Below are positions 5,864 to 62,455 of a stretch of DNA of 64,000 bases, in pieces (positions within the stretch are counted from its first letter, which is position 1; each line of letters starts with the position of its first letter). Origin of the DNA: Andalucia godoyi And28 (taxonomy: Eukaryota; Protista; Jakobida); the NCBI GenBank assembly GCA_009859145.1, contig VRVR01000028.1:222438-286437 (forward strand). The letters run 5' to 3'. Below the pieces are notes generated by a model. It made no database searches, was not told the DNA's origin, and saw nothing but the letters and a program-made list of their open reading frames with translations. The translations under genes and the position numbers were made by a program.

Positions 5864-6097
5864 GGACTCAAGCACCGTAGTGCATTGCTTCTTCATACTT
5901 TGACAGTCACTTTCTCTTTTTTTCAGGAATATTCGATTTGGTTCCACAGGATCGGTTGCACAGATTCATGCACGCTGAGCTTTGCAAGGCGAGCGCACCG
6001 TGTTGTTTGTGATGCCCTTGCAACCAAACAGACAGGCAAGCACACATAAGAGAGAAAGTTGAGGATTGAGGCTGCAGGGGAATAAAGAGAAAGAGAA

Positions 6098-7846
6098 ATG
6101 GACGAGTTTCTGCAGCAGTTCTCGTCTGCGGAAATGATAGCGTGTTTTTCGAATTTGTGTCCGAAGCTGAGATCGGATGCGGTGCTGTTGGACAAGCCAG
6201 GAATGATCGAGCTGTTGCTGACCTTTGTTTCGGATCTGTACGCAGACCAATGGGTTGAGAAGAAGCTGAAGACGAAGCTGGAGAGCTTTGGAATGTGTTG
6301 CGTGGAGCGTCCAGACGCTTGTTGGACGGATCGTGTCTGGTATGCACGGTGTCTTGTGCGGCAATCCCCGTTTCTTTTTGAGCATGGCAAGCTCTCTGTG
6401 GAAGACCTGAGAGCCATTTGCAGAGTTTTGGAGATTTCTGGCACTGGCAAAAAAGCAGATGTCGTGCAGAAGATCAGTGCAAAGTTCATTGCGGACCGCG
6501 CACTGCAAGGCAGTATCCTGCTGCCCAAAAGTCAGCAGGAGCCTGGATCCAATCCATCGAGAAGTGGTGCGCACGTTCATAAGAATGTACCGCAGCTGAC
6601 AGTCGATGCGTCAGTGCAGTCTCCTTTGACAGCGTCCCAGACACCTACTGCTATGAAACAGTCCTCCTCGTCATCGACACCGCTGTCCAGCTGTTCCACA
6701 CCCGTGTTTGCGTTTGATCGGTCCCCGAATTTGAATGTCAGCGCGGAAGAAAAGGACGCTCTGGTGTCGAAATTCAATGCCAACTCAGTGTTGCCGCTGT
6801 CGCCGTCCTTGCGGACGTCATCAACAATAGTCGATTATTCCCAAAGGACATCGATTGGACGAGCAGAAACCGCTGAGCCGCTCAGCATCGATGCTCCACC
6901 GTTTTCAGCGGATCAAGAAGCTGCCGACGTCAACGTTGGACGAGAGATGCCGAAATCACCTGGCATTGAGCATTCATCTCTCGGTGTGTCGAGTTCGACG
7001 GGACACCAAGACTGCCTCGCTGCGTATTTGACCAGCACAGAACATCCGATCCGAAACCATGACTTCATAATGAAGAGCAGTGCAGATGCAGAGTGCCCGA
7101 GGACGGAAGAAGAAAAGGAGGAGGAGGAGGAGGATAATGCGAACCCTTTGCGTGACAGGGACCAAGAAACGCTCGATGTTCGTCGCCCAGTGAACGACAG
7201 CCGATCTCCAGTTCGCTCGAGGCCGAGAGAGTCCCTCAGCAGTTCGTGTTACGTTCGCCGAGACGTTTCTCATCTTCGCGACGCCGTTTTTGGCTTGCGA
7301 AATGACATTGATATGTACACGCGAGACCATCGCAGCTGTGTGGTCCTTCCCGAGGTAGACCATATTTGGGAGTGCCAGCTTGCGGATTTTGCTGTGAACG
7401 TGGTTTCTCAGCACGAGCAAAAGCCTGTAGTGCGTGACATGTCATTAGCGGCAGAAAATCTAGCAGCGATCTTGAACGACGTTTGCAATCTGAATGTGAC
7501 ACACAAGAAATGGAATGAGGCGAAGAAAGGACCGTTTACTGCATTCCTGAATCGATATCACGGAAATTCCGGATCCAGACTTCGCTCGGTATCGCTGCAG
7601 CAGATGATCAACATGTCGAAGTCGCAGCAACGAAGATTGACAGAAGACAGCTGGGATTCGTTTTGGTCCAACGTTGCAGTCACAATGTCTGCTTCGCACG
7701 ACGTGATTTCGTCCAGAATAGAAGATGCAAAAGATGCATTGCATCCGTACGGCAGAGCAGGCGCCGTCCTGGGCTTGTTTCAAGAAGAATTGCATACATT
7801 GATGGAGGCTCTCAAACTCGACGACATCAAGAACAGCGCCCGATAG
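6098..7846 (+). CDS. SAP-domain protein with a C-terminal HNH-type nuclease domain
   Basis: SAP motif LSVEDLRAICRVLEISGTGKKADVVQKI. HNH-like DIDMYT...EVDHIWE...NLNVTHKKWNEAKK. Low-complexity Ser-rich linker between them. Confidence 0.7.
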   Translation: MDEFLQQFSSAEMIACFSNLCPKLRSDAVLLDKPGMIELLLTFVSDLYADQWVEKKLKTKLESFGMCCVERPDACWTDRVWYARCLVRQSPFLFEHGKLSVEDLRAICRVLEISGTGKKADVVQKISAKFIADRALQGSILLPKSQQEPGSNPSRSGAHVHKNVPQLTVDASVQSPLTASQTPTAMKQSSSSSTPLSSCSTPVFAFDRSPNLNVSAEEKDALVSKFNANSVLPLSPSLRTSSTIVDYSQRTSIGRAETAEPLSIDAPPFSADQEAADVNVGREMPKSPGIEHSSLGVSSSTGHQDCLAAYLTSTEHPIRNHDFIMKSSADAECPRTEEEKEEEEEDNANPLRDRDQETLDVRRPVNDSRSPVRSRPRESLSSSCYVRRDVSHLRDAVFGLRNDIDMYTRDHRSCVVLPEVDHIWECQLADFAVNVVSQHEQKPVVRDMSLAAENLAAILNDVCNLNVTHKKWNEAKKGPFTAFLNRYHGNSGSRLRSVSLQQMINMSKSQQRRLTEDSWDSFWSNVAVTMSASHDVISSRIEDAKDALHPYGRAGAVLGLFQEELHTLMEALKLDDIKNSAR

Positions 7847-8189
7847 CTCCGGAATTCTCAAAAAACACCGTCCACATCTTTTTTTTAATTACATCCAGGC
7901 TCGCTTGTCGTGGCATCACCGCAAGCCACGGATCGTCCAGCCCGAAGCTCGCAGATGCGGAGTTTCAGTGGCCGGATTGCTTCCGGCTGTAGATGATTCT
8001 TTCGCTCATGTTTCCCACTCAGATCTGAGAGGTTTTCGTTTTGTTTTCTTTCTGCTGCTTTTGCAAATCATATATATTATACATTTTCATCAGTACATAT
8101 CAAATCAGAGACAAACACGCAGACACACACACACACACACACACGGACGCTCGCATTCCTTCACACAGCCAAACAGACAGAGAGAAAGC

Positions 8190-10416: not shown

Positions 10417-10631
10417 TCTCGCGCCTTCTCGGCCTCACCTCACCTTACTCACTCGCCTCACTCACTCGCTCGCTCTGTTATTCAAAGCGAAAACAAGACC
10501 AAAGCACCCTAGCCCATTCATAACCTGTTCTACCCAATGTTTCCCATTCCACAAGGCATACAACAGACCAATCTCGAAATTCAAAAAACAGAACAAATAA
10601 AATAAAATACAAAGAAGAGGTAACAAGGCCG

Positions 10632-11186
10632 CTGGATAATAACACGTCATTGTCATGCATGCGGATGGAAGTATGCATAAACAGACACGGTCGACATTGG
10701 CCGACACTAGCACGTTTTGTTTCACAGGGAATTCGTGCTTATGCACGCTCGGCCAAAATTCAGCCGGTGACACAGGCTCTGCATTTTCGACACTCTTTAA
10801 CGCAGCATCCGTAGCCATCTATCATTCTATCATTCGTTGGTTCTGCTTTATTTATTCAAATATGGGCGTGAGTGCGCTGGGATGACGCATTCGCCTACGC
10901 CGCTCGATGCCAGGGCCTCCTAGGTCCCGCAGACCTCCTAAGAGACCCACATGTCACTACGCCTGCTGCTAGGGCCGTCAGCATCAAAATGCACCCTTCT
11001 CAGGAACAACGTGTCACGCTGAGAAAGTGGCTCGCAGATTGATCGAGATTGGGAACGGAGCGCGGAGCATTTATCTGAAGAGCGCCGTGAGGCGTGTTGG
11101 AGCCTATCCCGTTCGCGGCAACGGGATGCAAGATTGAATATGCATGTCTATTCGTAGATATGCATGCTCAGTGTATAATGTAGGCG
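10632..11186 (+). mobile_element. Dispersed structured repeat family 1, copy 1 (longest; putative non-autonomous element)
   Basis: The left end (GATAATAACACGTCATTGTCATGCAT...) and the right roughly 150 bp (...AGATTGATCGAGA...GTATAATGTAGGCG) recur at 29734-30195 and 51991-52439. No credible ORF; many hairpins. The repeat is certain; mobility is inferred. Confidence 0.65.
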
Positions 11187-11514
11187 CAATCGCAAGTTTA
11201 AAACCAAAAACCAAACCAAAAACCAAGAAACAGGTGTTTAATTAAAAACGATTGTAAATATACTCTTGAACCTATGAGGATATCAGACTTGAAGCCATCT
11301 GACGACAAACCAAGCAAGACGAATGCCGCACAAGCCCGAACGTCGTGTCTCGGATTTTTCATTCCTTTTCTCCAGTTTCCCAATTGGACATTCGTTCATT
11401 TCGTTATTTTTCTTTTTCTATCTTTAGTTGTCATTTTCTTTTCGCTTACCTTCATTTCCCGGGATTTTCTGTGTTTTAGACTTTTTTCTACGGTTTTTTT
11501 TGGCAGTCATCGTC

Positions 11515-11578
11515 GAGTGAGAGAGCTTGTGAGAGCTTGTGAGAGCTAGTGTGAGTGTGAGTGTGAGTGTGAGTGTGA

Positions 11579-11620
<42 letters not shown>
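11515..11620 (+). repeat. Compound (GAGTGT)n/(GT)n/(GA)n microsatellite directly upstream of an ATG
   Basis: Read directly from the sequence. Confidence 0.9.
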
Positions 11621-11621
<1 letters not shown>

Positions 11622-11623
<2 letters not shown>

Positions 11624-12347
11624 GACGGATGCTGATCTTCTTGATTTCCGGGCCAAGGTGTTTCCTGCTCTTGCATTTCTGAATGTCTTGTGTGGGCTGG
11701 GCGCAGCAGTGTTTTTCGCAATGCGTACCCGCCAATCGTATGCAGTGATGCCGGGAGTGTTCACGGATGCTAGGACGGTGTCACTGTTGATTCTCAGCAT
11801 TTTATCGCTGTTCTTTTCCTTTATCGGCATCTTCTCTGCAGTCATGATCCTCTCGTTGCTTGTGTCCATGGTCTCTGTGCTTGGAGTGCACGTGGCTCTT
11901 GCACCCCGCAAGCCGCATGCATACCTGGTCTTTGGACTTTCGCTGCTTGCCGTCCTCTTGATCTCGGGCTACAGCCCCCTTCAAGCCCCGACCGCTGTGA
12001 ACCCGCTCTCCATCCAGAAGGGCGACTGCGAGAACTACTATGGAAACAAGGTGGACCAGGATAAGCGATGCGCGGATTCCCTGCTTTCCTATGTCCGCGT
12101 CGGCGGTACCTTTGTCCTCTTCTTTATGATCTACACTGCATACTGTGCATTCTCAGTCGCAACCTCTGCAGAGTACAGCATCCCCGTCGAGCTCGGGCTC
12201 TCGTCGCAGTGGGCAAGAGAGTCGATGAACACCGCAGTCGCTGCATGGGCTGGGGCACAGGCCGCTGCGCAACCGCACACGGTCACTGCCGTCTCAAGCA
12301 GCGCCCCTGCGCAGCAGTCGCAGAACGCGTATCAGGCCGTTCCGTAA
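11622..12347 (+). CDS. Hypothetical polytopic membrane protein (4-5 TM)
   Basis: Start at MTDADLL (ATG 11622). Several hydrophobic helices, a loop with two Cys (GDCENYY...KRCAD) and an Ala/Gln-rich tail. Confidence 0.75.
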
Positions 12348-12402: not shown

Positions 12403-12787
12403 TCAGAGGAGCAAGAGTAGTCTGAATCGAGTTTTCCGTGGAGAACGAACGTTGCACACGGTTTTTCCACGGACCCTCCGCATTAAACTCACAGCTATGG
12501 GCGTCCCAGGGGCCGTTTCATCCCGGGTCTTCCTGTGACAGTCGACCCGGGTTCGTTTCTGGTTCCCCAGCACACTCTTGCGAGTGTCTCCCACCTAGAG
12601 AGTAAAGTAGCTGTTTTGCGTCCCGTCTCGTCGAGAACAGGACCGACGCCTCAGACCTTCCCAAGCGACGGGGTGGTAGCTTCACTTTTTATTTCCCCTT
12701 GGTTTTCGGGTACTCTGAATTGTTTCGTACGGTTTCGCCTGTGCGGAAGCTTTGCCCTTGACCAAATCAGCTGGTGCTTCTCCGCGC
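12403..12787 (-). ncRNA. RPR1: Nuclear RNase P RNA
   Basis: The minus strand carries CR-I CUUGGGAAGGUCUGAG (plus 12650-12662), CR-IV-like GUGAGUUUAAUG (12481-12492) and CR-V AUUCAGACUACUC (12415-12426). CR-I and CR-V pair to form P4 (GUCUGA/UCAGAC). The termini pair as P1 (CGGAGAAGCA/UGCUCCUCUG). Length is about 385 nt; ends are approximate. Confidence 0.9.
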
Positions 12788-12984: not shown

Positions 12985-15900
12985 CTATTGTTGCTCGCTG
13001 GTCACGAGGCAGCTGTACAGATATTCGGAAGCATTGGAAACGGATTCCTTTTCAACAGCGCTTCTGGCATGCTGAAGAGTAATGGTTTCGGCTGGGGCTT
13101 CGCGGAGTTGCAACAGAACTCGGGTCCGCAGCTGCAGCCATTCCGCATCGCTCCGTCCCTCCATATCCTCTGCAACTCGCTTGGCAAACATTGCGACAAA
13201 ATCCTGGGAAAAGAGCACTTCGCGAGAAGAAAGGCGCTGCATAAAATCAACGAGCAGCAAAATCAGCGGATGCAAGTTCGGACGGTTCGCAAACAAGGAA
13301 AAGACGGTCATCATGTACGGAGAAACTATCCTCAGCCCAGCAAGCAGCCCTTCCGAAGACACAGAGAGCCGCAGTAGCAGCCACTTCAGTGCGCACAGCA
13401 GCAAGTGGGCACAATCCACATCCTCATTGTTCTTTGAAGCTGCCCCCGCAGAATCAAAGAGGCTTGCATAGGACACCAGCACGTCCACAATGGACTCCAG
13501 AGGGAATGGCTCCACTCGAGAATTGTTCATGTAGTTGACGGCATATGCAGACACAATCCACAAGAACGTCCGTATCGTCTGCATGTGCTTGCGAGGATCC
13601 AGCTTGCGCGACGGATCAACCGGAACGAGGAAATTTTTCGCAAGTTTGGCATTCTGTGGCATGGAGAGCTCTCGGAGAACGTGCGTTGCGGCGGCAATGC
13701 GCGCTTCTGGTTCGCGAGCATGGACCAGGTCAGAAACAGGATCTGGAAGAGCGGATGCTTCGAATCCAGAACGGGAAGGAACACCGGGGTGCCTCATTCC
13801 AAGATAATTGATCGCAGAAGGAAGATACAGCGCCGCAAAATCGGAAATGTACGTGCGATTGACCGTCGAGGCAGCCGATCCCGACGCAAGAGCATTTTCA
13901 ACAGCAATCACGTCGGCAGTAAGCAACCGAAAATATGATTCAACGACCCGAGGATGATGTCTCTCGTATTCTTTCAAAATCCTGTCAACACGCAGTGCCG
14001 TGGACTTTCCAAACTCCTTCCTCTCCGTTTCTCGTGCGCCTTTCAAGTACAGCCCCGCAATCAGCGCAAACAGCTCTCCATGGATACCTTCTGGATTCTT
14101 GACAAACGGCGCTAGCTTCGTCGACGGGAACGACGGATTAATTTCCGCAAGACTCTGGATGGTGTCGATTAGCAACCCTTCCATGATAGCCATGGAGTCG
14201 CCCACCAGCAACGAGATGTGAGCAGGAACGCGCAGGTTTTGGACAACCACAATGACACCGTCCTCCAGCGAGGACCAATCATACTCGCGTATCGCTTGCT
14301 TTTGATCCCCCTTTCTCGAATACGCAGTATCCACGTAGAATTGCACATTGTTGAGGATCTTCAAAACCTTGACATCGTCGAAATTCATTTGGAAAATGTT
14401 CCGGAAGACATCCTCCACAGGCTTGAAGGAAATGTCCTTGTTCTGCGTCAGATACTTGAACAAAAACGCCTTGAAGGCGGGGCGATTGTCGAAATCAAAG
14501 CTGAACAACAAGCAAAATATCCCGGATAGTGAATAAGTACGCAAAATGGTAGAAAACAAATTGGTGATGCACGATGTCAAGACCGGAGCCACAAGAGAGC
14601 CAGTCGTTGCCATTCGAAAGACGCGGACCACAGAAAGAAATTGTTCAAATAATGTTCCATAAACAACCGTGGAATACTGGGAAACAAGAGACTCGACCAA
14701 CGACGAGCACATGGCGACAACGTCCAAGTGAACAAAAGACCGATAAACATCGGGCGTCACGGCGTTGAGCAATCTCGTTAAAGCAGCAGTGAACAACGGG
14801 GAGACAATTCCTTCTTCAAGAGTCACCGTCGTCAGAATGTGCGAAACAGCAACAAGAAACGCTTTGTTCAGGATTGGAGAGTCCTGGAGGTGGGCAGGGG
14901 CATACTGCAGCAAAATAAATCGAATTTCATTTGGCAGGTTGGCCGGAGAGACGGCATCCAAAATTGCATCCAGGATCAATGTGGACGATGATCCATTCAT
15001 CACGGTATTGATGCGATCGATGATCGCTCCCTTATCATCAACACCAGCAATCTCCCCCGTTTCAGCGGAAGCTCCCCCCGATGCCGGAGCTCCAAAAGAT
15101 ATCATCGTCACAGCCAGCTGGATCCCGGAAAGAAGGGCTGCCTCAGACGCATCCTGGCGGGTGATAATCTCTCGGACAACATCAAGGCCAACGAAACCCT
15201 TGCTTCGAAATTCTCGATGGAACTGCAGCAAGGATCGGAAAATCGACGGAATGTCGCCATCCGCAAAAACACGATTCGTCAGCGCAATCGACAACCAGTG
15301 GAACAAGAAGTTCCATGAGCGGAGACTCATTCCTTCCAGCAATGCTCGAGTCTGGAAGCGAACGAACCGAGAAGCATCTGTTTGCTCTACAGACAAGATC
15401 TGGAGCACAATGAAGGACAATTTTGACAGGTGTTCATCAGAAAACACTCCATCTGTTTCGTTGCTCGAGCACACGACCGCTACAATCGCTTCTATCATAT
15501 TGACGGCCTGGAACGCAGCATCTGTCCGCTCCTTCTCGTTCGATGATGCGAACTGCTCCGAAACAGCAGTCAGCACATGCGCGGGTGACGCTGAAAGGCA
15601 CGCAATAGCAAGTCGGGCTGAAGAATCCATGTTTGCAGGAGGACGCCGAAACGACGTCCACAGCTGTCGAGTGATGTACGGCGTAACAAATCGAGCACAA
15701 TCGGCAGATCTGCGAATGATCTTGTCCAGTGTGCCATTTGCGATCGGAGAGAAAGACCGTGTGTTGCACAAATGAAGCAAGCGAATCAGCCAAAATTCAT
15801 TTCCTTGGATAGAAATGGGATGAGGCAAGCTCGCAGCAAGAGCATGTTGCGGGACCTGGAGAGGATCCAAATGATTGGCTGCAACCGACGCGGTGTTTTC

Positions 15901-17460
15901 AGCAGAGTCGGCAGTCTGAATTTGAAGACCAAGACCGACCTCAATGAGCAGGCACAATTTCCGAACAAACTCCAACTCCACAGGGGTGTCGCTCGCCAGC
16001 TTGCGATGAAGCCTGGAAAGTCTGTTGAGAAACTCGTCGGTCTGACTGCATATTGCCGGGTACAGCAAGTGGTTATCATGCAATTTCTCAAAACATGAGA
16101 AAAGATTCAACGTGTCTTCGAGAGACAATGCATCTTGCAGCAGTGACAATATGGCCTTGACTGGAATGAGAACACCAAGCTTGGAGAACAACACAAACCA
16201 CCGAACCGCTCTGACGGGATCCGTCTCGCAAACGGGTAGCACATGGATGTCCCATAACGTGGATTTCGCAAGGGAATGAAACCGCGAAACATTGCTGACA
16301 ATGGTGAGCAGGACGACGCGGCATTCCGAGTTGAGGTTAAGGATGTCAAACCAGTGAGGCAACACAAGATCCGCAGCTCTCCAGAAGGTCTTCATGCGAG
16401 AGAGTAGCTCTATTCGCGAGAGCTTCAGCAGCCAGTCGTCATCTCGAGCCAGTGTACTGTATTTCGGAATCGATGCAGGTAGCTGCGGAACGAGACATTG
16501 GCAAAATACCTTGAAGTGCTTTTCATATGCAGTCTTGAGCCACTCCATGAACAAGGGGTCTTGCGTCAACAGTCGCTCGTTGATGTTGCCAATGGCCAAA
16601 GCGAGAAACTCTGGAACGTACTCTGCTGGAGTGGATTCATTCAGCGGACACAGGATCTGAAGCATTTGCAGCCCAAGGACCTGGTCGTTTTCTGCATATT
16701 CGTACGCCAGTGATTCAACTTTGGAAACCGAGCCCTTCAGCAGCGATGCGATTGCAGCTCTCAGTGCGCTTGACTCGGAGTTTGTTGCATACGGCGTGGG
16801 GAGTTTGACGTTTGCATTCGGATCGGCAAAGTTCTGTTCAGGAGGAAAGAGAGCTCGAAGCATGCACGACGCTGAATACCTCGAGAGCGGATCCCCAAAC
16901 GCGATAATGGTCAGCAGGAATTGGCGCGCATCCACGCCCACTTGAATCGCGTGCGTGAAGAGGCCGTGGATGTCCTCCGAAACGGACTCGTCCCACCCAT
17001 ACAGCGACAATGCTGCAGAACACAGCAGATTAAGCAAGACAGGGACCTTGTCGAGTGTCTGATCCAACACGAGTACGCAAGTCCGCGCCAGTGGACTCGC
17101 GATTGGCCTGCTTGCATAATTCAGCAGGTATGGACAAATGAGCAGCAGGAACTGTTCGAGAGTTTGCATCGACTGAATCGTGAATATCTGTCGAAGAACG
17201 ACGACGAGCCGCTGGACCTGTGCGATAATCTCACCTTGCAGCTCTCGATCCAGATAAAACGTCATCAGACGCAGCAAGTCTCCTGGAACAATAACAGCTT
17301 CCGAAGGCCCAAACGACATAGCTTCTTCAAGGCACCCAATAAGGGAGCTCAGAGGAGTCACATGCTTGCCCAGACGAGCATCAGACTGCGCCTTTTGCAA
17401 CGCTGTCCAACATTTTTGATACTTTTTCGGAAACGCCTTTGGAACCGCAAACGCACTCAT
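12985..17460 (-). CDS. Large HEAT/ARM-like protein, UNC-79-like
   Basis: Start at MSAFAVPK (ATG 17460). Segments LLTIIAFG..ASCMLRALFP, LCPLNESTP, WLKTAYEKHFKVFCQCLVP, VLPHWFDIL and WFVLFSKLGVLIP occur in the same order as the segments I recall from animal UNC79. Not verified by search. Confidence 0.6.
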   Translation of the reverse strand: MSAFAVPKAFPKKYQKCWTALQKAQSDARLGKHVTPLSSLIGCLEEAMSFGPSEAVIVPGDLLRLMTFYLDRELQGEIIAQVQRLVVVLRQIFTIQSMQTLEQFLLLICPYLLNYASRPIASPLARTCVLVLDQTLDKVPVLLNLLCSAALSLYGWDESVSEDIHGLFTHAIQVGVDARQFLLTIIAFGDPLSRYSASCMLRALFPPEQNFADPNANVKLPTPYATNSESSALRAAIASLLKGSVSKVESLAYEYAENDQVLGLQMLQILCPLNESTPAEYVPEFLALAIGNINERLLTQDPLFMEWLKTAYEKHFKVFCQCLVPQLPASIPKYSTLARDDDWLLKLSRIELLSRMKTFWRAADLVLPHWFDILNLNSECRVVLLTIVSNVSRFHSLAKSTLWDIHVLPVCETDPVRAVRWFVLFSKLGVLIPVKAILSLLQDALSLEDTLNLFSCFEKLHDNHLLYPAICSQTDEFLNRLSRLHRKLASDTPVELEFVRKLCLLIEVGLGLQIQTADSAENTASVAANHLDPLQVPQHALAASLPHPISIQGNEFWLIRLLHLCNTRSFSPIANGTLDKIIRRSADCARFVTPYITRQLWTSFRRPPANMDSSARLAIACLSASPAHVLTAVSEQFASSNEKERTDAAFQAVNMIEAIVAVVCSSNETDGVFSDEHLSKLSFIVLQILSVEQTDASRFVRFQTRALLEGMSLRSWNFLFHWLSIALTNRVFADGDIPSIFRSLLQFHREFRSKGFVGLDVVREIITRQDASEAALLSGIQLAVTMISFGAPASGGASAETGEIAGVDDKGAIIDRINTVMNGSSSTLILDAILDAVSPANLPNEIRFILLQYAPAHLQDSPILNKAFLVAVSHILTTVTLEEGIVSPLFTAALTRLLNAVTPDVYRSFVHLDVVAMCSSLVESLVSQYSTVVYGTLFEQFLSVVRVFRMATTGSLVAPVLTSCITNLFSTILRTYSLSGIFCLLFSFDFDNRPAFKAFLFKYLTQNKDISFKPVEDVFRNIFQMNFDDVKVLKILNNVQFYVDTAYSRKGDQKQAIREYDWSSLEDGVIVVVQNLRVPAHISLLVGDSMAIMEGLLIDTIQSLAEINPSFPSTKLAPFVKNPEGIHGELFALIAGLYLKGARETERKEFGKSTALRVDRILKEYERHHPRVVESYFRLLTADVIAVENALASGSAASTVNRTYISDFAALYLPSAINYLGMRHPGVPSRSGFEASALPDPVSDLVHAREPEARIAAATHVLRELSMPQNAKLAKNFLVPVDPSRKLDPRKHMQTIRTFLWIVSAYAVNYMNNSRVEPFPLESIVDVLVSYASLFDSAGAASKNNEDVDCAHLLLCALKWLLLRLSVSSEGLLAGLRIVSPYMMTVFSLFANRPNLHPLILLLVDFMQRLSSREVLFSQDFVAMFAKRVAEDMEGRSDAEWLQLRTRVLLQLREAPAETITLQHARSAVEKESVSNASEYLYSCLVTSEQQ

Positions 17461-17524
17461 CTCCTTTCCTTTTCCCTCCTTCCCAACAAAAACAAAAAAA
17501 CAAAACTCAGCCACCCTGTTTTAT

Positions 17525-17568
<44 letters not shown>
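17525..17568 (+). repeat. (GTT)n microsatellite
   Basis: Read directly from the sequence. Confidence 0.9.
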
Positions 17569-17569
<1 letters not shown>

Positions 17570-17964
17570 TCGTCTTGACAAGAAGGTATACGTAAGAAGA
17601 AACTATATTGCAAGCAATAATGCAGCAGAATACCCAAGAGACAAGGAAACTCTCTGTTTTCCCCTCCGTTTTCTCTAACGACCTGGCATCAACAACAAGT
17701 ACTTGATGCTTCGGAATTCATAAATTTTTATGGAGACACATACTTTTTCGAAATGCAATTCTGCTCTGTTCATTGAAATTATGATTATGATTTGATTTTC
17801 GCAATGTTTGACGTGTTTTTCCGCAGCCTTTTCTATTTGAGGACGTCAAAACAAGGCGAGAGGAAGATTGTATTTTAAAAAAGAGGCAGTTGTCGTTTTA
17901 AAAGAGAGAGTGTACAGAACAGAGTCAAGAAAGGGGGGAGGGGAAAGAAAAGAGAGGAAGAAAA

Positions 17965-18726: not shown

Positions 18727-19150
18727 TCATTCTTGTGTCTCTGTCATACGTCTTTGCATCGAACGAGATTTCCCCCTCCCCCCGTTCATTGTAGTCTGTG
18801 GCTCACCAGACGTAAAAAAAAATATAGCAAGCAAACGAATGGTGAGAGGCGAGCATGTCATGTCACACCGGGTGACTTTTGTACGGGAATGTTGAAACGG
18901 AAAAGGCAATCCTTGTCTTTTTATTACAGTTTTGTATTTTCTCGTTTCGCACTCGGTGAAGTCGACAGGAATTCTCTCAAACACGGAATCGTGTTTTGTT
19001 TTGACTAGTTGCTTTCTCAATCAAAGAAGAGCGTTCTTTTCTTCTTTGTTTTTGTTTTTGTTCGTTTTGTTTTAAAATTAATTCAAACGACAAGAGAAGA
19101 AGAGAGCGGAAGCAAAACAAGAAGGGAAGAAACAAAGTGGATTGCGGACG

Positions 19151-21418
19151 ATGGCCAGCGAAACATCAAATCTTTTGCAATCTCCTGGGTATGGATCCGC
19201 GACGAGTGGCGAGTCTGTGGAGTCTAATGCGTGGTATCATTTGATGTATCACCATATCCGTCAAGGGTCTGCAGATTCAGACTCTTCTCATTCTCCGTCG
19301 GCAACTCGTGCGGATGCGGATGCGGCGGTGCTGCTAGGAGAGCCGGATGCGTCCGTTATTGAAACAAGAGAAATTTCAGCATGGGAGTTTCCTGGGTACG
19401 GAGAAGAAATGGGGATTTCCTTCGCGGAGCCTGTAACGAATAGCGGAAGTGTGCCGGATGACGGTCATGGAAGCCCGACGTCGATCAACGGCTCTCTTGC
19501 AGGTGCCGGAGGTGTCGGGATTGCGGCCTACCAAACAAGAACAGCACACGGACAGCGGAATGAAAACAGCGGAATCAAGGTGGAGCCCGTGTCCAACAAG
19601 CCGCACACGAAACTTGGACAGCTGCTGTCTACGGCGATCTGCGGGAACGACATTACTGCGTCGTGCTTGTATTGCGCTGGGTTCTGTGCTCTATCTGCCG
19701 GAGTGTGGGCACCCGTGTCGCTCGGTCTGGTAGCCGCACTGTTGTATCTGTTCCGCTCCGTGTACGGAGAAGTTGGTACTGCATTGCCGTTGAATGGTGG
19801 CACATACACGTGCTTGTTGAACACGACAAGCAAGGCAGTTGCATCGGTTGCGGGAGCGCTGTCGTTTCTGTCGTATGCTGCTACGAGTGTTGTGTCGGCG
19901 GCGTCTGCCATTGAATACGGCCAGAACGTCTGGGGTGACTGCAACGGAACTCTGTGGACCATTGTTCTGCTCGCTGCATTTTGCATTTTGAACTTGCTGG
20001 GTATCACAGAGTCTGCAGTCGTTGCTGCGATCATCTTTGTGGTGCACATGATTGTCATGCTTACTCTTTTTGGATTTGGAGGGTATGCCTTCTTTCGAGA
20101 TTTGGATCAGCTGCAGGAGAATTGGCATGCGTCCAACGCCGTGCCTGGGAACAAGAACTTTGGATTGGCAATTCTGATTGGCTTCGGTTCGGCAATGCTG
20201 GGAATTACTGGTTTCGAAACCTCTGCGAATTTCATTGAAGAACAGAAACCGGGTGTGTTTCCAAAGACTCTTCGGAACATGTGGATCGCCGTGACTTTGT
20301 TCAATCCGTTCCTGTCGTTGTTTGCATCCGGTGTGCTGAGCAATCAAGAAATATATGATCACTCCAACGACCTTCTTGCGCAACTTGGACTGAAATCTGC
20401 TGGCAGCTGGCTGCATTTTGCCGTGTCGCTTGATGCATTTCTGGTCTTGTCTGGTTCTGTTCTGACTGGTTTTGTCGGTGTCGTCGGATTGCTTGCACGG
20501 CTTTCTCTGGACCGCTGCTTGCCCAATGTGCTGCTGTCCAAGAATCGCTTCACCAAAACGCACCATGTGATCATCATTGGTTTCTTTGCCACGTGTGTAT
20601 CGCTGATTTTTCTGGTCGGCGGAATTGAGAATCTTGATATCTTGGAAGGGGTGTACACGATGGCTTTTTTGTCTGTCATGGCATTGTTTGCGATAGGAAA
20701 CATGCTTATGAAGTACAAGCGTGCCAAACTGCCGCGTGCGATTCGCGCAAGCTGGCCTACTGCCGTGTTTGCGCTGCTTGGTGTGCTGATTGCATTGAGC
20801 GTGAATGTGTGGCAGAATCCCGATTGGGTCTATTATTTTGCGCTGTACTTCTTTGTGACACTGCTGATTCTGTTTGCCATGTTCCAGCGCGTGCGGCTCG
20901 TGAAGTTCTTCATGTATTTTTCGTCTCTGTTTCTTCGCTTCCTGAGAAAACGGGGCTGTCTCAAGGTTCGTGACGGTGAAGACGCATCCGAGCTCGAAAT
21001 GAGATGGAAGAAACGTGTCGGTCGGTACATGAAGAAGCTCACGGATCAGCGCATTGTGTTTTTCACTCGGCAAGGAAGGCTTCCGTCGCTCAACAAGGCT
21101 GTTTTGTACGTCCGGGAGAACGAACAGTCGCACCACATCATCATATGCCACATGTATACGGGCGATGAAAATGAAGTCGCCAACAAGAAGCAGCTGGATC
21201 GGATTCGAAGAAGCATTTCCGTGTTGGATGAATGCTATCCAAAGTTGCGAATTGATCTTTTGTTTGTGAAGGCCCGGTTTTCTCCGGAGAACGTCGAGCG
21301 TTTGTCGAGATCATTGAACATTCCCAAGAACTTTATGTTCATTGCGTGTCCCAGCGACAAGAGCTTGGAGGAAATCCGCATCGCAGATTTTGGCGGCGTG
21401 CGCATGATCACGCATTAG
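19151..21418 (+). CDS. APC-superfamily amino acid permease with a C-terminal cytoplasmic domain
   Basis: STAICGNDITASCLY, ALPLNGGTY, GITGFETSANFIEEQ and about 12 TM helices. First ATG in frame is 19151. Confidence 0.9.
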   Translation: MASETSNLLQSPGYGSATSGESVESNAWYHLMYHHIRQGSADSDSSHSPSATRADADAAVLLGEPDASVIETREISAWEFPGYGEEMGISFAEPVTNSGSVPDDGHGSPTSINGSLAGAGGVGIAAYQTRTAHGQRNENSGIKVEPVSNKPHTKLGQLLSTAICGNDITASCLYCAGFCALSAGVWAPVSLGLVAALLYLFRSVYGEVGTALPLNGGTYTCLLNTTSKAVASVAGALSFLSYAATSVVSAASAIEYGQNVWGDCNGTLWTIVLLAAFCILNLLGITESAVVAAIIFVVHMIVMLTLFGFGGYAFFRDLDQLQENWHASNAVPGNKNFGLAILIGFGSAMLGITGFETSANFIEEQKPGVFPKTLRNMWIAVTLFNPFLSLFASGVLSNQEIYDHSNDLLAQLGLKSAGSWLHFAVSLDAFLVLSGSVLTGFVGVVGLLARLSLDRCLPNVLLSKNRFTKTHHVIIIGFFATCVSLIFLVGGIENLDILEGVYTMAFLSVMALFAIGNMLMKYKRAKLPRAIRASWPTAVFALLGVLIALSVNVWQNPDWVYYFALYFFVTLLILFAMFQRVRLVKFFMYFSSLFLRFLRKRGCLKVRDGEDASELEMRWKKRVGRYMKKLTDQRIVFFTRQGRLPSLNKAVLYVRENEQSHHIIICHMYTGDENEVANKKQLDRIRRSISVLDECYPKLRIDLLFVKARFSPENVERLSRSLNIPKNFMFIACPSDKSLEEIRIADFGGVRMITH

Positions 21419-29414: not shown

Positions 29415-29733
29415 CCCTTCCTTCTTTCCTTCCCCCGTTTGGATCGCAGCGAGGTCAACCTGTCGTAGTCTCCGGTCTTCTGCTTCCGTCGCTGCGCTTC
29501 AGAAGAAGCACCGACTCTCAAGACAGGACAAAGACAAGAATCACGATTGCGCAACGTTTGGTTATGATCGTATTTTCCTGCTTTTTTTTTAAAAAAAGAT
29601 CAAATTGAATGACACTCATTAATTAATTCATATTACTATTTCGAATTAAAAAATCATTAATTGTTCAGTTCAAGTTTTCCTTTTTTCCTTTAGGGTTTTT
29701 TTGGTCATTTGAGGCTGGGAGGCTATGCAGCCG

Positions 29734-30195
29734 CTGAATAATAACACGTCATTGTCATGCATGCGGATGGAAGTATACATAAGCAGACATGGTCGACACT
29801 GGCCGACGCTAGCACGTTTGTTTCACACGAATTCGTGCTTACGCACGCTCGGCCAAAATTCAGCCGGTGACACAGGCTCCGCATTTTCGACGCTCTTTAA
29901 CGCAGCATCCGTAGCCATCTATCATTCTATCATTCGTTGGTCCGGTTTTTTGGTTTCACTTTTTGCAGCGTTTGTTCCATAAGGCGACCGAGTATCGCGA
30001 GCGGCGCAAGCAAAGTATTTGCACGTCCCGCGTATAGCTCACAGATTGATCGAGATTGGGAACGGAGCGCGGAACATCTATCTGAAGAACGCAGAGAGGT
30101 GTGTTGGGGGGCCTATCCCCTTCCCGGCAGCGGGATGCAAGATTGAATATGCATGTCTCTTCGTAGTTATGCATACTCAGTGTATAATGTAGGCG
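29734..30195 (+). mobile_element. Dispersed structured repeat family 1, copy 2
   Basis: About 29734-29940 matches 10632-10840 closely, and the last roughly 170 bp match the end of copy 1. About 95 bp of the interior is unique. Confidence 0.65.
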
Positions 30196-30224: not shown

Positions 30225-32366
30225 TTACGCCTGCTTGGAAGCAGCACCACCACGTTCTAGGTCAATTTCCTTTGCAAGCTGGTCGATTTTGTTGAACTGC
30301 CATGGCCAGCGCACATTGTAGAGGAACTGCCTAAGATCAAAGCGGTTGTCCTCAGGCGAATAGTTCTCTGCGTGGTAAGACGGAGTGAGGGTCGTCATCT
30401 TGTGGCGATTGATCGAGTAAAACTTGAAAAAGTGCTTGACCTTTTCCGCGACAGCCGTTGCAGGCAGTGAATTCCACTTGTATGCCAATGTCTTGAACAT
30501 GGATACCGGTCCCTGACGCCCGATCTTCCTGAGCCGTCCATAGATAGAGAGCTCTTCGTACGACATTCCCATGTCTTCCTCGTCCGTCTGGACATACGAG
30601 TCGGTGATCGGCCGAAGCTCTGCTGTGGGCGGCGCAGTTTCGACATCAAGCAGAGAAGGATATCCGAGATTGGCTCCCGCCCAGCGCAAGAAGCGCTTGA
30701 TGTCGACCTTGGAAATAGATCCAATGGGGTTCACATCTGCAGAGGAGCAATCGTACTTTGTCATGTATCCTCTAAGCCCCTCGTCGACGTTCGCAGATCC
30801 CAAGACCAGCAACGCACCCTGTCCTCCACGCACCCAAGGGATGAGCTGGGCGAAAAAGTACGACATGACCATTCGGATGCGGGCTTGAATATTCTGAAGA
30901 GCCAAATCCTCCGCGGCCGACCCTCCATGAACTGCAAACTTCGGCACTCGGCCCGTTGCAGCAGTAAAGAATGCAAGAATGGCGGATATGATCACGTCAA
31001 TCGAGGTGCTCATGTGATATGCTCCAATTTCCTCGCTGAGCTTCTTGGCTCGGTCGCGCGTTTCTTTAGATGAATTCTCCGTTCCCCAATACACAGTGCA
31101 AAAGATGCGGTTCGCCACATCCTTCGGATCGCTCGGGATATACTCTGGACCCTGTTTCGTGATGCGCTGGATGTCCCCAAGCACAGTCTGTGTCCCGGCC
31201 TGGCATTCCTTGACGATCAACTGGCACATGCATCCGATGATCGCGGCGGTGGACGACGAGTCGGCACCACCCGATAGGGGCAGGAAGAAACCGGCGACAC
31301 CGCAGCGACGCAAGTAGTCCCACAACCAGCACGCTGGACCATACGCAATCTCTTCTTCTGGAAGCAAGTACTTCACGGGCACCGCGTCGGAAAAGAACGC
31401 ACCAGTTGCTGCATTCCACGAGGGTCGTGAAGTTGTCAGCGCGGCGTTCACGTGGATGCGCAAAAGAGGCGATGGCGCAGCTGCTGCCTGGAAACCACGG
31501 GAAGCAGATCCGTTGCGATATTCGATGATGCTATCGAGATCCACGGTTGCTGTGATAATTTCCGAGTCCTTGAGCGAAAACTGCGATCCTTGGGCCAGCA
31601 GTTGTCCGTTCAAAAACACCATGGAGGAGCCATCATAGTACAACCGTCCTCCGTCACAGCCCTTTTGGTTCGCATAGAGGTACAGTCCACCTGCCTTTGC
31701 CGTAGCAGAACGTAGTAACTCCACACGAGTGTCCAGCTTCCGCAACTGGTGATGCGATCCTGAGCCATTTCCAATGATTTCCGCTCCGTCCAAGAACAAC
31801 TGGATGTGTGGAGCATCCGGAGTAAACAGCTCCTCACAAGTTTCTGTCCCAAAGGACGTATCCGTGAATTGCAGCACAGCGCAACCAAAGGGAACGCTGG
31901 AAGGATGGTCTGCAGGGCATGCACTGCGAACCACAGAAGGCAATGCGATCGGCTCCGTGGTGTATCCACCTTGCCAGGCTACAAAGTACCGCATCTCACG
32001 GTAATTTCCGTCCTGCGCCAGGAACAACTTTGGGCGAATGAGCAAAATACGGCGATTATAGACGTACACGCGGCAATTGTAGCGAACCGAACGATGGATT
32101 ACACACATTCCGATGTCGCAAAGGATGCCGTCGGTTGCATCCGTTGCCATGATAGCCGCAAGGCTTTCCCAGGAATGTTCATACGTATCCGGCTCAAGAA
32201 AATGGTCTTCACAGCCATATCCGGAAAGCTCAAGCTCAGGGCCAATTCGATACGACGCCCCACGACGCTTGGCTTCTCGAATTGAATCCAGCGTTCGCGT
32301 CAAGTTGCCTTCAAAATCCAGGGCCCATTGGTTGAGATTGCATGTTGCAACGGTGATCACTCGCAT
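30225..32366 (-). CDS. NADSYN1: Glutamine-dependent NAD+ synthetase
   Basis: Nitrilase-like domain (TCNLNQWALDF, GPELE, RPK, ETCEEL) fused to an NAD synthase domain (PLSGGADS, ALQNIQARIRM, YMTKYDCSSADVNPIG, EDNRFDLR). Confidence 0.98.
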   Translation of the reverse strand: MRVITVATCNLNQWALDFEGNLTRTLDSIREAKRRGASYRIGPELELSGYGCEDHFLEPDTYEHSWESLAAIMATDATDGILCDIGMCVIHRSVRYNCRVYVYNRRILLIRPKLFLAQDGNYREMRYFVAWQGGYTTEPIALPSVVRSACPADHPSSVPFGCAVLQFTDTSFGTETCEELFTPDAPHIQLFLDGAEIIGNGSGSHHQLRKLDTRVELLRSATAKAGGLYLYANQKGCDGGRLYYDGSSMVFLNGQLLAQGSQFSLKDSEIITATVDLDSIIEYRNGSASRGFQAAAAPSPLLRIHVNAALTTSRPSWNAATGAFFSDAVPVKYLLPEEEIAYGPACWLWDYLRRCGVAGFFLPLSGGADSSSTAAIIGCMCQLIVKECQAGTQTVLGDIQRITKQGPEYIPSDPKDVANRIFCTVYWGTENSSKETRDRAKKLSEEIGAYHMSTSIDVIISAILAFFTAATGRVPKFAVHGGSAAEDLALQNIQARIRMVMSYFFAQLIPWVRGGQGALLVLGSANVDEGLRGYMTKYDCSSADVNPIGSISKVDIKRFLRWAGANLGYPSLLDVETAPPTAELRPITDSYVQTDEEDMGMSYEELSIYGRLRKIGRQGPVSMFKTLAYKWNSLPATAVAEKVKHFFKFYSINRHKMTTLTPSYHAENYSPEDNRFDLRQFLYNVRWPWQFNKIDQLAKEIDLERGGAASKQA

Positions 32367-32399
32367 CTTTTGCCCTTTCCTTGGTGGATGAAGCAGAAT

Positions 32400-32510
32400 G
32401 AGAGACAGAGAGACAGTGAGACAGTGAGAGACAGAGAGAGACAGTAAGAGACAGTGAGAGAGAGAAACAGAGAAACAAAGAGAGAAACAGAGAGAAAGAG
32501 AAAGAGAAAA
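32400..32510 (+). repeat. Compound GAGACA/GAGAAA purine-rich tract upstream of NAD synthetase
   Basis: Read directly from the sequence. Confidence 0.85.
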
Positions 32511-32935: not shown

Positions 32936-34009
32936 TTACAAAAGACACGTGGTTTCGAAAACCATTGCAGGAATCAGGTACGGGTCACAGTTGGAGGCCG
33001 GGCGTCTGTCCTCGAGGTATCCCTTTTGGAGGCGCTCGGAGTCACGGGGAACACGGATTGACGCACCGCGGTTGGCAACACCCCAGGAGAATCTGTCCAT
33101 GGGCGCGGTTTCGTGGCGTCCGGTCAAGCGACGCTCGTTTCCTTCACCATATGCAGTGATGTGCTGTGCATGGCGCTGTCCGAGCTTTTCGCAAGCCTCG
33201 ACAATGTACTTCCAGCCACCGTCCTCACGCATGGGCTTGGTGGAAAAGTTCGTGTGGCAGCCGGAGCCGTTCCAGTCACCAGGAATGGGCTTGGGGTCCA
33301 GCGAAACACGGACACCAAAGTCCTCGGCAACACGGTTCAGCAAGTAACGGGCACACAAGAGCTGGTCACCCATGTCAAGTCCCAGCACTGGTCCGACCTG
33401 GAACTCCCACTGGCCAGGCATAACCTCTCCGTTGATTCCGGAGATCTGGATGCCCGCATTCAAGCAGCAGCGATAGTGCGCCTCGACGATTTCACGGCCA
33501 AATGCATTCTCTGCACCGACCGAGCAGTAGTAGGGACCCTGTTCACCGGGGTATCCGCCTTTGGGCCATCCCAGAGGCCAGTTGTCGGCCGAGAAGAGGG
33601 CGAACTCCTGCTCCATTCCAAACCAAGGCTCGAGCTCCTTCTTCTGTGCAAACACGCGCTCCGCAAAGACGCGGGTGTTTCCAGGCAGCGGAGTCATGTC
33701 TGGCTTGTAGCAATCGCAGATGACAATCACATTGTCACCACCGCGGAACGGGTCCTTGAAAATGCGCTGGGGCTTCAGAAGAACCTCGGAGTCATTTCCG
33801 GGGGCCTGACCAGTCGACGAGCCATCGAAGTTCCAGATGGGAAGCGCCTCGGGAGTGGCGGGCACAGACTTGGGAACAGTCTTGCACTTGGATCGGATAT
33901 CACGACCAGATCCGCCAACCCACACATACTCCGCCTGGTAAACATCCAGGTTGATCGAGAGCTGCATGTAGCGGTCACGGAGGGCCTTGTCCAAAACGAC
34001 GGTCGACAT
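32936..34009 (-). CDS. GLN1: Glutamine synthetase type II
   Basis: [64 protein letters not shown] and [11 protein letters not shown]. Confidence 0.98.
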
Positions 34010-34075
34010 TTGCTGAGATATTTTTTTTCCTCCTATGTTCTTTCGGATTGAAAAGATATAAAAATCCCACGATTG

Positions 34076-34084
<9 letters not shown>

Positions 34085-34150
<66 letters not shown>
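34085..34150 (+). repeat. (GA)n microsatellite upstream of glutamine synthetase
   Basis: Read directly from the sequence. Confidence 0.9.
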
Positions 34151-34154
<4 letters not shown>

Positions 34155-34700
34155 ACAAAGGAAGAAAAGGAAGGGGAAAAGTTGGAGCGAAGACGTCAGA
34201 GGCTTTGAGGATTTTGAAATTGATTTTGGTGCGAAACTCGGGGAAAAGAGGGTTCATCGTGCGGAAATGGGGCCCGGCATCTGGTGCGTACACGCTGCAA
34301 ACGGGTAAGGCTTATGTGAAGGGCAGGTCTCTGGGGTTCTTCGGAATCCAGAGATTCTGCATGCAGCAGCAAGATTGGTGTTGATGCTCCTGCGGATGGA
34401 AAGCTCAGCTCCACCAGGAATACCAAATTAGGCAATTGCTCGCATCTCTGCGAGTGCCAACGGAATCTCCGACATCCCAAAAATATATAAAGAAATCCCC
34501 CCCCTCGGCTGACTGCTCTGGCTCGTGTCGCCCTTTCCCACACAAATACAATCCGCCCAGCCGTCACGGGCGAATGGGGTCAGCCGCAGAATTTTAGTTT
34601 CTTAATTTTCTTTATCATTAAACATAAAATAATTATCATTATAAAACTCTTTTTCTCTTTTCTTTTCATTTTCTTTCCTCCTCCTCCAGTCCTTCGCTGG

Positions 34701-37700: not shown

Positions 37701-38186
37701 ATTGCGCTGCTCTCGCCTCCCCTGAACAGCTCCAAGATATCTGCGCGCGGTGTTGCATTCTCCCGTATGCTTACTGACTCGTATGCGTTCCATGCATTTG
37801 ATGCTGCCGCCGCAACTGCATCCGGAACATCGGTCAAGAAGGACCCGCGCATCTGGAGACTGGTTCCTTCTCTTGCGGACGTGTCGCTGCTTTGCGCTGC
37901 GGCTGCTCAAGACGATGTCCCGGAGGTTCGCAGACTGCTTGCTCGCAGAATTAATGTCAATGCAGGTGACTATGATGGTCGTACGGCTCTTCATGTTGCC
38001 GCCTCCGCTGGCCATGAGGCGACTGTCCTGGTGCTTCTCAACTACGGCGCCGACCCGCTTGTTCGTGATCGCTGGGGAGCAACGCCACTGGATGATTCTC
38101 GAAACAACGGGTTCGAGGTTTGTGTCGCAGCCATGGAGAGCTCGCTGGTGCACTCTTCCGATGCCAAGAAGCGAATCGGTGTGTAG
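34701..38186 (+). CDS. GLS: Internally duplicated glutaminase: [glutaminase-ankyrin] x2, second catalytic domain degenerate; possible mitochondrial presequence
   Basis: Module 1: YIPQLA, QSCSK, EPSGRNFN, HNPYINSGA, CGMYDYSG, PSKSG, then ankyrins (DYDGRTALHLAA, DRFGNTPL). Module 2: YIPQLA, QHCAN, EPSGLVGD, HNPFTNAGA, CGMYDFSG, PAVAG, then ankyrins (DYDGRTALHVAA, DRWGATPL). The N-terminus is Ser/Arg/Phe-rich and lacks acidic residues. Confidence 0.93.
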   Translation: MFRTASAFFLSSSSVCTRFASSAKPVSSYLLKLQGCTLAPVTHPASLSPLPTSNFFPTTMVKHSSSQAALDALRQTRRATAPVTSADEALYNRISAVSPNGKVTVRSVIQVLEKLGIRVLSDERLAPIFAPLLTSDDPVLELADLVSLERKSLLVERALHGLLVIPDWSAFTADIADIANRVAGNKSGDVARYIPQLARVNPEQFGVSVCSVDGQRFSVGQSNVPFCVQSCSKVITYCMALEEHGEETVHKHIGREPSGRNFNELVLNKDKLPHNPYINSGAIMAVSLIHPSLPWHERIDRTFKTWSDLAGHTPISFDNATYLSESSTADRNFTLGYMMKEAGKFPEGSVLEEVLNFYFMMCSIENTGEQMATIAATLANGGVCPITGQRVFQETTVRNALSLMSSCGMYDYSGEFAFSVGFPSKSGVAGSLMVCIPGVGGFCTWSPRLDKLGNSVRGIDFCRELSARYNFHTFDSIDDGSNGATSKNKQLTSVGGKSIKKDPRHKSQKDSRVDEVSQMLYAASVGDTMRLLQLFARGASLESADYDGRTALHLAASEGHIEAVQYVLTKVSNISPLDRFGNTPLDDAHRHGHLEVAALIQESVKDGARQIPKFKAEEERFLFAIDLGGNGTVSRREFRHVFEVCGLALANHPQIAACFNKTFGDSAMNGSILDDSHLDLPVTEQDFRKLLSPSNGNAAAVIHKVLTGTLVVPDFASLEKDLRRIYGRVQSVNHAAENAKNAAYIPQLASVDPDVFGAAVCTVDGQRCFMGDAHVPFTMQHCANVLTYCAALESKGEDVVHEKVGREPSGLVGDHLTLNHKNRPHNPFTNAGALACGSFLYEKEPLADRYDHMMQLARQSTGFRDENKSTSGHIGFSLSVFVAEYNHSDRNKCLLYHMREKGVFEGTANLDEFLQLYLMMCSLEMDCASMSVFAATLASGGICPITGERVFQNSTVRAALSLMASCGMYDFSGEWAFAIGVPAVAGASGALMLVIPGVMGIALLSPPLNSSKISARGVAFSRMLTDSYAFHAFDAAAATASGTSVKKDPRIWRLVPSLADVSLLCAAAAQDDVPEVRRLLARRINVNAGDYDGRTALHVAASAGHEATVLVLLNYGADPLVRDRWGATPLDDSRNNGFEVCVAAMESSLVHSSDAKKRIGV

Positions 38187-59071: not shown

Positions 59072-59213
59072 AAACTCCTTTTGGAGTCTATCTGTATTAT
59101 TTGAGGTTGCGCTTACTGTTGTGTTCATCGTTATTGTTGCTATTGTTACTATCGTCGTTATTGCTTTTGAAAGCGCTGCCTAGGCAGAACGTGTGAAATC
59201 CCCTTGCAAAAGA

Positions 59214-62364: not shown

Positions 62365-62455
62365 AAGACGACGACGACGACGACAACAACAACAACAACA
62401 AACAAACAAACGAACAAACAAACAAACAAACGAACAAACAAACAAACAAACGAAC
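62365..62455 (+). repeat. Compound (GAC)n(AAC)n(AAAC)n microsatellite
   Basis: Read directly from the sequence. Confidence 0.9.

Follow-up and report, generated by a model that had tools for sequence, protein, structure and literature searches.

The 64-kb stretch of DNA analysed here (the window; 64,000 nucleotides of contig VRVR01000028.1) is gene-dense, has a G+C content of about 50% and carries long, intron-less open reading frames (ORFs) on both strands; it fits the nuclear genome of Andalucia godoyi, which, as published, is about 20 Mb in size and compact, with genes that are mostly intron-free and neighbours that are often opposite in orientation. G+C (52.7% against 52.5%) and codon usage (RSCU r = 0.84 with nine A. 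godoyi CDS fragments) agree as well, though they separate genomes poorly, and twelve peptides from window ORFs do not occur in the part covered of the A. godoyi mitochondrial-proteome table. Specifically, we consider one minus-strand gene of the window, whose product is very probably the orthologue of UNC79 in a jakobid-like protist (Discoba), an all-helical ARM/HEAT solenoid of about 1500 residues that would act as a scaffold together with UNC80 and a channel. UNC79, a large cytoplasmic scaffold, and UNC80 are subunits, both essential and little understood, belonging to NALCN, the sodium-leak channel whose mutations lead to severe neurodevelopmental disease in humans.

The gene is intact. The ORF list gives a minus-strand ORF at 12985-17514, and the first ATG within it, at 17460, opens a protein of 1491 amino acids (aa) that runs from MSAFAVPKAF to SEQQ. 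By tblastn this is the sole UNC79-like place in the window, and its two parts are as follows.

12985..17460, minus strand: full coding sequence, free of introns, for the UNC79 homologue (1491 aa), from the ATG at 17460 to the stop codon at 12985-12987; the translation and both termini align with two relatives
17461..17514, minus strand: in-frame upstream extension of the mechanical ORF, with a GTG start; the homologues begin at the residue matching the ATG at 17460

The N-termini of both relatives (P0002 and P0003, described below) align with the window protein from residue 1, with M1, S2, P7, K8 and F10 invariant, and for this reason we take the ATG at 17460 as the start; the upstream extension, judged from the same alignment, is probably an untranslated leader. 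All three proteins share the N-terminal pattern MS..(F)xxPKxFxKKYxKxWT, and their C-termini align to the last residues. Because the relatives match it colinearly over its entire length, no intron is needed to explain the gene, and because 1491 sense codons follow one another at about 50% G+C, a chance ORF is ruled out.

The relatives of this protein are few. An exhaustive phmmer search with aa 1-1200 against 1.84 billion cluster representatives returned only two, P0002 and P0003. The closest is P0002 (1865 aa, E = 4e-37, 32% identity), an unannotated protein encoded at locus L001, a Logan contig from run SRR15116022. The closest named relative is P0003 (1627 aa, E = 1e-15, 27% identity over the N-terminal 375 aa), which agrees letter for letter with “Discoba EP01028 Stygiella incarcerata P011142”, an entry of the UNC79 homologue supplement of Senatore et al. 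2025. P0003 lies above the threshold of the Pfam UNC-79 family (50.9 bits, E = 1.2e-13, with the cutoff at 27) and matches mammalian UNC79 chains in the PDB (E = 5e-4). Since P0003 is both a published UNC79 homologue above the Pfam threshold and a relative of the window protein at E = 1e-15, the window protein is linked transitively to UNC79. A word-indexed protein search returned the query itself or nothing, whether it was run with the single protein, with a full-length profile of the trio (the window protein, P0002 and the Stygiella protein P0003) or with an N-terminal profile of the trio, the index being too insensitive for relatives of this kind.

Direct comparison with UNC79 proteins from other lineages gives the same picture. 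Aligned by phmmer with the Stygiella UNC79, the window protein matches over aa 6-375 (domain E = 3.5e-21 at Z=1). Our reference set, taken from the supplement of Senatore et al. 2025, consists of UNC79 from Thecamonas (an apusomonad), Lingula (an animal) and the fungi Cryptococcus and Rhizophagus. Pairwise phmmer matches to three of these are all colinear, with per-comparison P-values of 3.8e-6 for Thecamonas, 3.1e-5 for Lingula and 4.9e-4 for Cryptococcus. With a hidden Markov model (HMM) built from these four sequences, none of them from a jakobid, the window protein reaches 16.7 bits and the Stygiella protein 19.9, against 6.8 for the best of 500 shuffles of the window protein; with the Stygiella sequence added to the model, the score of the window protein is 31.8 bits, spread over three colinear domains. 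Likewise, an N-terminal profile of the trio, searched against 177,635 distinct PDB sequences, finds three distinct UNC79 sequences (E = 0.0025-0.0039) and nothing else to E = 10. On these sequence comparisons, the window gene is genuinely related to animal UNC79, as a protist member that has diverged very far.

Profile-profile alignment agrees with this and also separates UNC79 from its partner subunit. Aligned by hhalign with the four UNC79 sequences, the trio gives a probability of 98.4% and E = 7.4e-15 over 871 columns (query positions 225-1197), whereas against a helical-repeat control made of UNC80 from Andalucia, Stygiella and Rigifila it gives a probability of 1.9% and E = 0.026 over 52 columns. 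The homology thus extends to UNC79 over most of the length of the protein and is specific with respect to UNC80, and it bears out the UNC79-like identity that had been proposed for this gene from the sequence and from quoted animal motifs (hereafter, the original prediction). The same contrast argues against the idea that the gene encodes the UNC80 subunit, or a paralogue resembling UNC79 and UNC80, instead of UNC79 itself. The overall shape is indeed common to the two subunits, and the 52 columns do align; nonetheless, the probability for UNC80 is far below that for UNC79, UNC80 takes only the 13th place in the structural ranking described below, and the two jakobids already studied each possess a separate UNC80 (ANDGO_00023 in Andalucia and P009240 in Stygiella). 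We consider an identity as UNC80 or as such a paralogue barely credible.

Structure prediction is consistent with UNC79, within the limits of the models. AlphaFold run on the single sequence of aa 1-700 gave a mean predicted local distance difference test score (pLDDT) of 45, useful for secondary structure only, and a run with three sequences gave a pLDDT of 51.7 and a predicted template-modelling score (pTM) of 0.32, at which the global shape is untrustworthy. Both runs are all-helical (some 57 helices are predicted up to residue 1200, at low confidence), in agreement with the helical-repeat protein of roughly 1490 aa that had been read from the ORF translation. When the AlphaFold model was compared by Foldseek with 350,542 PDB chains, UNC79 chains took ranks 1 to 4 (7sx4_D at 2.8e-10, 7sx3_D at 6.7e-9, 7wji_B at 2.1e-8 and 7w7g_A at 1.3e-7), ahead of the first unrelated HEAT protein (3.9e-6) and of UNC80 (7w7g_B, 3.1e-5). 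A comparison of this type had been suggested as a check in the original prediction, and UNC79 indeed ranks first.

Several results nonetheless weigh against the assignment to UNC79. In Pfam, UNC-79 (PF14776) is the sole family that the window protein matches up to E = 10, at aa 304-328 (the WLKTAYEKHF... motif); however, the score of 12.5 bits (E = 0.052) lies below the family's gathering score of 27. We note that a curated cutoff of this kind is a convenience and not a definition of homology. The profile check named in the original prediction came out in favour of UNC79: UNC-79 is the only family found and neither Dopey nor MON2 appears, with the score staying under the threshold. Against the PDB, phmmer found no UNC79 with the whole protein or with aa 150-470. 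The hhalign result is weak when the window protein is used alone (E = 3.7e-4) or with P0002 only (2.4e-3), and because the alignment is marginal once Stygiella is removed, much of the profile signal is carried by that sequence. Finally, the Foldseek TM-scores are about 0.2 and the models are of low confidence (pLDDT 45 and 52); because of these TM-scores, we use only the ranking and not the superposition.

It is possible to read these weaknesses as signs of an unrelated HEAT/ARM protein, whose likeness to UNC79 would consist of generic helical repeats and chance motifs. Besides the weak single-sequence statistics, such a reading could draw on the profile of the C-terminal block, which against the PDB matches designed helical repeat proteins only and no UNC79, and on the more than 100 HEAT proteins that Foldseek returns at E < 1e-3; a full-length three-sequence profile found nothing relevant in the PDB. 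However, generic repeats would not be expected to leave UNC-79 as the only Pfam family to E = 10, to align with UNC79 over 871 columns and not with an equally helical UNC80, or to place all four UNC79 chains above every other solenoid in the PDB, and chance motifs would not be expected to stay colinear across the species compared (partly so in the fungi), as the six described below do; the shuffled sequences, moreover, reach at most 6.8 bits where the real protein reaches 16.7. An unrelated HEAT/ARM protein is therefore strongly disfavoured, and we regard it as very improbable. Other HEAT families, Dopey and MON2 among them, are set aside since Pfam gives no family but UNC-79 to E = 10, and a phmmer match to a carnitine antiporter in the PDB (E = 0.02) is dismissed as a chance match between hydrophobic helices.

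The UNC79 assignment can be followed down to individual motifs, which lie on the minus strand as listed here with their counterparts in other species.

16126..17460, minus strand: N-terminal conserved region, aa 1-445; counterpart of the Pfam UNC-79 domain and, in mouse UNC79, of the part in which the N-terminal heterodimerisation domain lies
16894..16917, minus strand: motif 1, LLTIIAFG, aa 182-189; LLYVIAYG in mammals, LLNVIAYG in Lingula, LLHIIASL in Thecamonas, LLTIIAHA in Cryptococcus
16627..16653, minus strand: motif 2, LCPLNESTP, aa 270-278; LCTPSENTP in mammals, FCKPKEELP in Lingula
16486..16542, minus strand: motif 3, WLKTAYEKHFKVFCQCLVP, aa 307-325; WLKTVCDVRFDVMVMCLLP in mammals; the stretch matched by Pfam UNC-79
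16339..16365, minus strand: motif 4, VLPHWFDIL, aa 366-374; IMPEWLEAI in mammals, IMPYWLESI in Lingula, ALPGWLDVL in Thecamonas
16162..16200, minus strand: motif 5, WFVLFSKLGVLIP, aa 421-433; WLQILSSLEIVVP in Lingula, WLALLSSAGVLLS in Thecamonas, WMRVLSYSGVEIP in Cryptococcus, from the hhalign alignment
14503..14526, minus strand: motif 6, SGIFCLLF, aa 979-986; NGIFPQLF in mouse, from a segment alignment

The six motifs occur in one order in the window protein, P0002, Stygiella, Thecamonas and Lingula, and partly in the fungi. Motifs 1 to 5 are those that the original prediction had quoted in this order, and they are found at nt 16162-16917, inside the interval of about 16100-16950 that it had given; motif 6 had been missed. 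The animal counterparts quoted with them are mostly right. Three are exact in solved mammalian UNC79 chains, namely LLYVIAYGPSQVKPPAVQMLFHYWP (LLYVIAYGP...AVQMLFHYWP), WLKTVCDVRFDVMVMCLLP and IMPEWLEAI, but the second reads LCTPSENTP in chain 7w7g_A and not LCKPNENTP, and the fifth was seen solely in the form carried by the brachiopod Lingula, WLQILSSLEIVVP. The lead was essentially correct.

Motif 6 is the best-conserved block of the C-terminal part, following the pattern [SNA]-G-x-[FY]-x-x-[LI]-F in seven of seven species and lying at 66-80% of the protein length; the best HMM domain of the window protein, aa 915-1050, spans it. In mouse UNC79, I2113 and L2117 form part of a hydrophobic crevice that receives the UNIM-A hairpin of the NALCN DI-DII linker (Kang and Chen 2022). 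Residues I981 and L985 of the window protein align with these two positions, through Lingula mapped to chain 7wji_B, while the other wall of the crevice, formed by A2061, L2064, L2065 and M2068 on an upstream helix, can be aligned only loosely. As judged from this alignment, the G-I-F-x-x-L-F block of the UNIM-A pocket is conserved in the window protein.

Comparing the spacing of the motifs reveals a difference between two groups of UNC79. Between motifs 1 and 2, Lingula has 226 residues, 12 of them Cys, and Cryptococcus has 491, of which 15 are Cys, whereas in the window protein, Stygiella and Thecamonas the interval measures 53-66 residues with 0-1 Cys. The window protein is a compact UNC79 that lacks the Cys-rich insert of animals and fungi, and the distribution among these sequences indicates that the insert is a later addition to an ancestral core.

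It is informative to place the window protein beside the known members of the family. It resembles Stygiella incarcerata P011142 (Jakobida) in being colinear over the full length (1491 aa against 1627), in carrying the six motifs and in lacking the Cys-rich insert; the two sequences are nonetheless very diverged, and the Stygiella protein differs in passing the Pfam UNC-79 threshold and in having extra low-complexity inserts. With mammalian UNC79 (PDB 7SX3/7SX4 chain D, 7WJI chain B and 7W7G chain A) it shares a predicted all-helical architecture, motifs 1-6 in order and the block of I2113 and L2117, but identity over the structural alignment is about 12-13%, and the mammalian protein has about 2650 residues instead of 1491, long disordered regions and, between motifs 1 and 2, a Cys-rich insert of about 220 residues. 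The Thecamonas trahens protein AMSG_09927 is likewise without the insert and shares the stretch FPPE...LP.P...ES..LRA..A.LL. Both Thecamonas and the fungal UNC79 proteins (Cryptococcus CNAG_06362 and Rhizophagus GLOIN_2v1502982) belong to the set with which the jakobid profile aligns over 871 columns; unlike the window protein, the fungal ones possess a C1-like Cys-rich insert (15 Cys) and long N-terminal extensions. For the Cryptococcus protein, a physical complex with Cch1/Mid1 has been shown, whereas the jakobid protein is known from its sequence.

The neighbourhood of the gene offers a further comparison with P0002. At 12405-12716 on the minus strand there is a nuclear gene for RNase P RNA, full-length (RF00009; 94.5 bits, E = 9.5e-26), about 270 nt downstream of the stop codon of the UNC79-like gene and on the same strand. 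On the P0002 contig L001, an RNase P RNA is present at 6057-6326 on the plus strand (71.5 bits), about 170 nt downstream of the UNC79-like gene and again on its strand, and the two RNAs show a mean column identity of 74%. The succession of UNC79-like gene and RNase P RNA is a conserved microsynteny, even though the two proteins are only 32% identical, and because the RNA lies downstream of both genes, it supports their orthology. Past the RNase P RNA the synteny ends, the next protein gene being different in the window and in L001. The two loci differ also in composition, the P0002 gene having 59% G+C against 51% in the window gene, and the low-complexity inserts of P0002 are longer.

What the protein does can be considered in light of two experimentally studied systems. 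In mammals (mouse and human), UNC79 pairs head to tail with UNC80, and the heterodimer recognises three motifs that lie in cytoplasmic loops of NALCN, aids delivery of the channel to the surface and lifts its auto-inhibition (Kang and Chen 2022). In Cryptococcus, the homologues of UNC79 and UNC80 associate physically with Cch1 and Mid1 (Boucher et al. 2024) and have mutant phenotypes in common with them. In jakobids, UNC80 homologues have been described (Andalucia ANDGO_00023 and Stygiella P009240), and four-domain channels of clade A, relatives of NALCN/Cch1, occur in Discoba, Andalucia and Stygiella among them (Senatore et al. 2025, PMC12412391); it is from the existence of these UNC80 homologues and channels that we propose the same scaffold role here. 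Specifically, by analogy with the mammalian complex and with the Cryptococcus biochemistry, the window protein would pair head-to-tail with the UNC80 orthologue, the pair would dock on the cytoplasmic loops of a four-domain cation channel of the NALCN/Cch1 type, and it would control surface delivery and gating of that channel. We infer that the window protein is most likely a scaffold acting with an UNC80 partner and a NALCN/Cch1-type channel, with partner, channel and physiological role all assigned by this analogy.

Three observations count against such a role. Within the 64-kb window there is no gene for UNC80, for a four-domain channel or for Mid1/FAM155. No FAM155/Mid1 was found in Discoba, and the dimer predicted for Stygiella UNC79 and UNC80 is not supercoiled, unlike the human one (both Senatore et al. 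2025, PMC12412391); because of these last two points, the jakobid complex may differ from the known one. Taken further, they invite the explanation that the gene is a true descendant of UNC79 which in jakobids does not serve, or never served, a NALCN/Cch1-type channel and has some other scaffold role, with or without UNC80. The window protein, about 1100 residues shorter than mammalian UNC79 and without the Cys-rich insert, would fit such a departure, as would the poor conservation of the upstream helix of the UNIM-A pocket. Nonetheless, both Andalucia and Stygiella possess UNC80 together with clade-A channels akin to NALCN/Cch1, the G-I-F-x-x-L-F block of the pocket is the best-conserved element of the C-terminal part, and in every lineage tested by experiment (animals and Cryptococcus) the proteins act with the channel. 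For these reasons we think a role apart from the channel unlikely, and a channel scaffold remains the reading that we prefer.

The rest of the window holds several features that are separate from the UNC79-like gene. A dispersed intergenic repeat of about 0.5 kb occurs in three plus-strand copies without a long ORF, of which the second is incomplete and the third still less complete; identity within the blocks they share is 88-93% (repeat families D2 and D4-D7). The first copy, the sole one searched (10500-11300), has no Rfam match. The repeat may represent a mobile element, small and non-autonomous, or else an uncharacterised family of RNA genes. Six genes connected with nitrogen or glutamine lie within 45 kb of one another, a grouping that may be coincidence. 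These and two further ORFs are located as follows.

10628-11186, 29730-30195 and 52215-52439, plus strand: dispersed repeat, first to third copy
19142-21418: amino-acid permease
30225-32366: ORF with glutamine-dependent NAD synthetase motifs, read from the translation
32936-34009: glutamine synthetase
34701-38186: glutaminase, 1161 aa, with ankyrin repeats and a mitochondrial-looking N-terminus
59193-60836 and 62544-63722: two ammonium transporters, convergent
41260-45156, plus strand: ORF of a glycogen debranching enzyme, 1298 aa
53313-58157, minus strand: protein of 1614 aa that joins a class III adenylyl/guanylyl cyclase catalytic domain to a PAS domain and TmcB-type TPR repeats

From its domains, the 1614-aa protein is a possible sensor cyclase. 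The N-terminal end of the debranching enzyme matches only positions 282-437 of the 439 in the glucanotransferase model, and the gene may really begin upstream of the GTG at which the mechanical ORF opens, or its first part may have been split off by an intron. Microsatellite-like tracts of (GA)n, (GT)n, (CA)n and (GTT)n are found in intergenic or 5′ positions at 8107-8185, 11509-11634, 17517-17576, 32386-32501, 34055-34158, 40626-40688 and 62365-62424; some enter ORFs, where they are read as HTHTHT, SASASA or poly-N, and a similar style is seen in published Andalucia godoyi proteins.

Homologues of UNC79 and UNC80 were established outside animals only in 2024-2025. Senatore et al. 2025 (J Gen Physiol, PMC12412391) described both in fungi, apusomonads, malawimonads and Discoba and argued for an origin in early eukaryotes; for Discoba they listed two UNC80 proteins (Andalucia and Stygiella) and one UNC79 (Stygiella), with none for Andalucia godoyi. 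The suggestion in the original prediction that the scaffold predates animals is therefore correct but already published, and the window gene, as one more UNC79, is an incremental addition rather than a surprise. What is new is a second UNC79 of jakobid type (a third, if P0002 is counted), with which the Discoba record no longer consists of one transcriptome sequence, and the delineation of an ancestral core, comprising the six colinear motifs with the block that lines the pocket, from the later Cys-rich insert. Furthermore, the score of 16.7 bits obtained with a model of non-jakobid sequences illustrates how HMM surveys built on animal and fungal UNC79 can miss genes of this kind.

The motifs of the window protein occur nowhere in the supplementary sequence files of Senatore et al. 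2025. We would tentatively suggest, as a possibility on which we hesitate to insist, that the gene is the Andalucia godoyi UNC79 missed by the 2025 survey, in which case jakobids would hold a full UNC79-UNC80 pair, with UNC79 in a minimal form of about 1500 residues that keeps the G-I-F-x-x-L-F pocket. If this is true, the contact between scaffold and channel itself, beyond the genes, would go back to the last ancestor shared by Discoba and Amorphea, and the protein would provide a compact UNC79, encoded without introns, for structural work.

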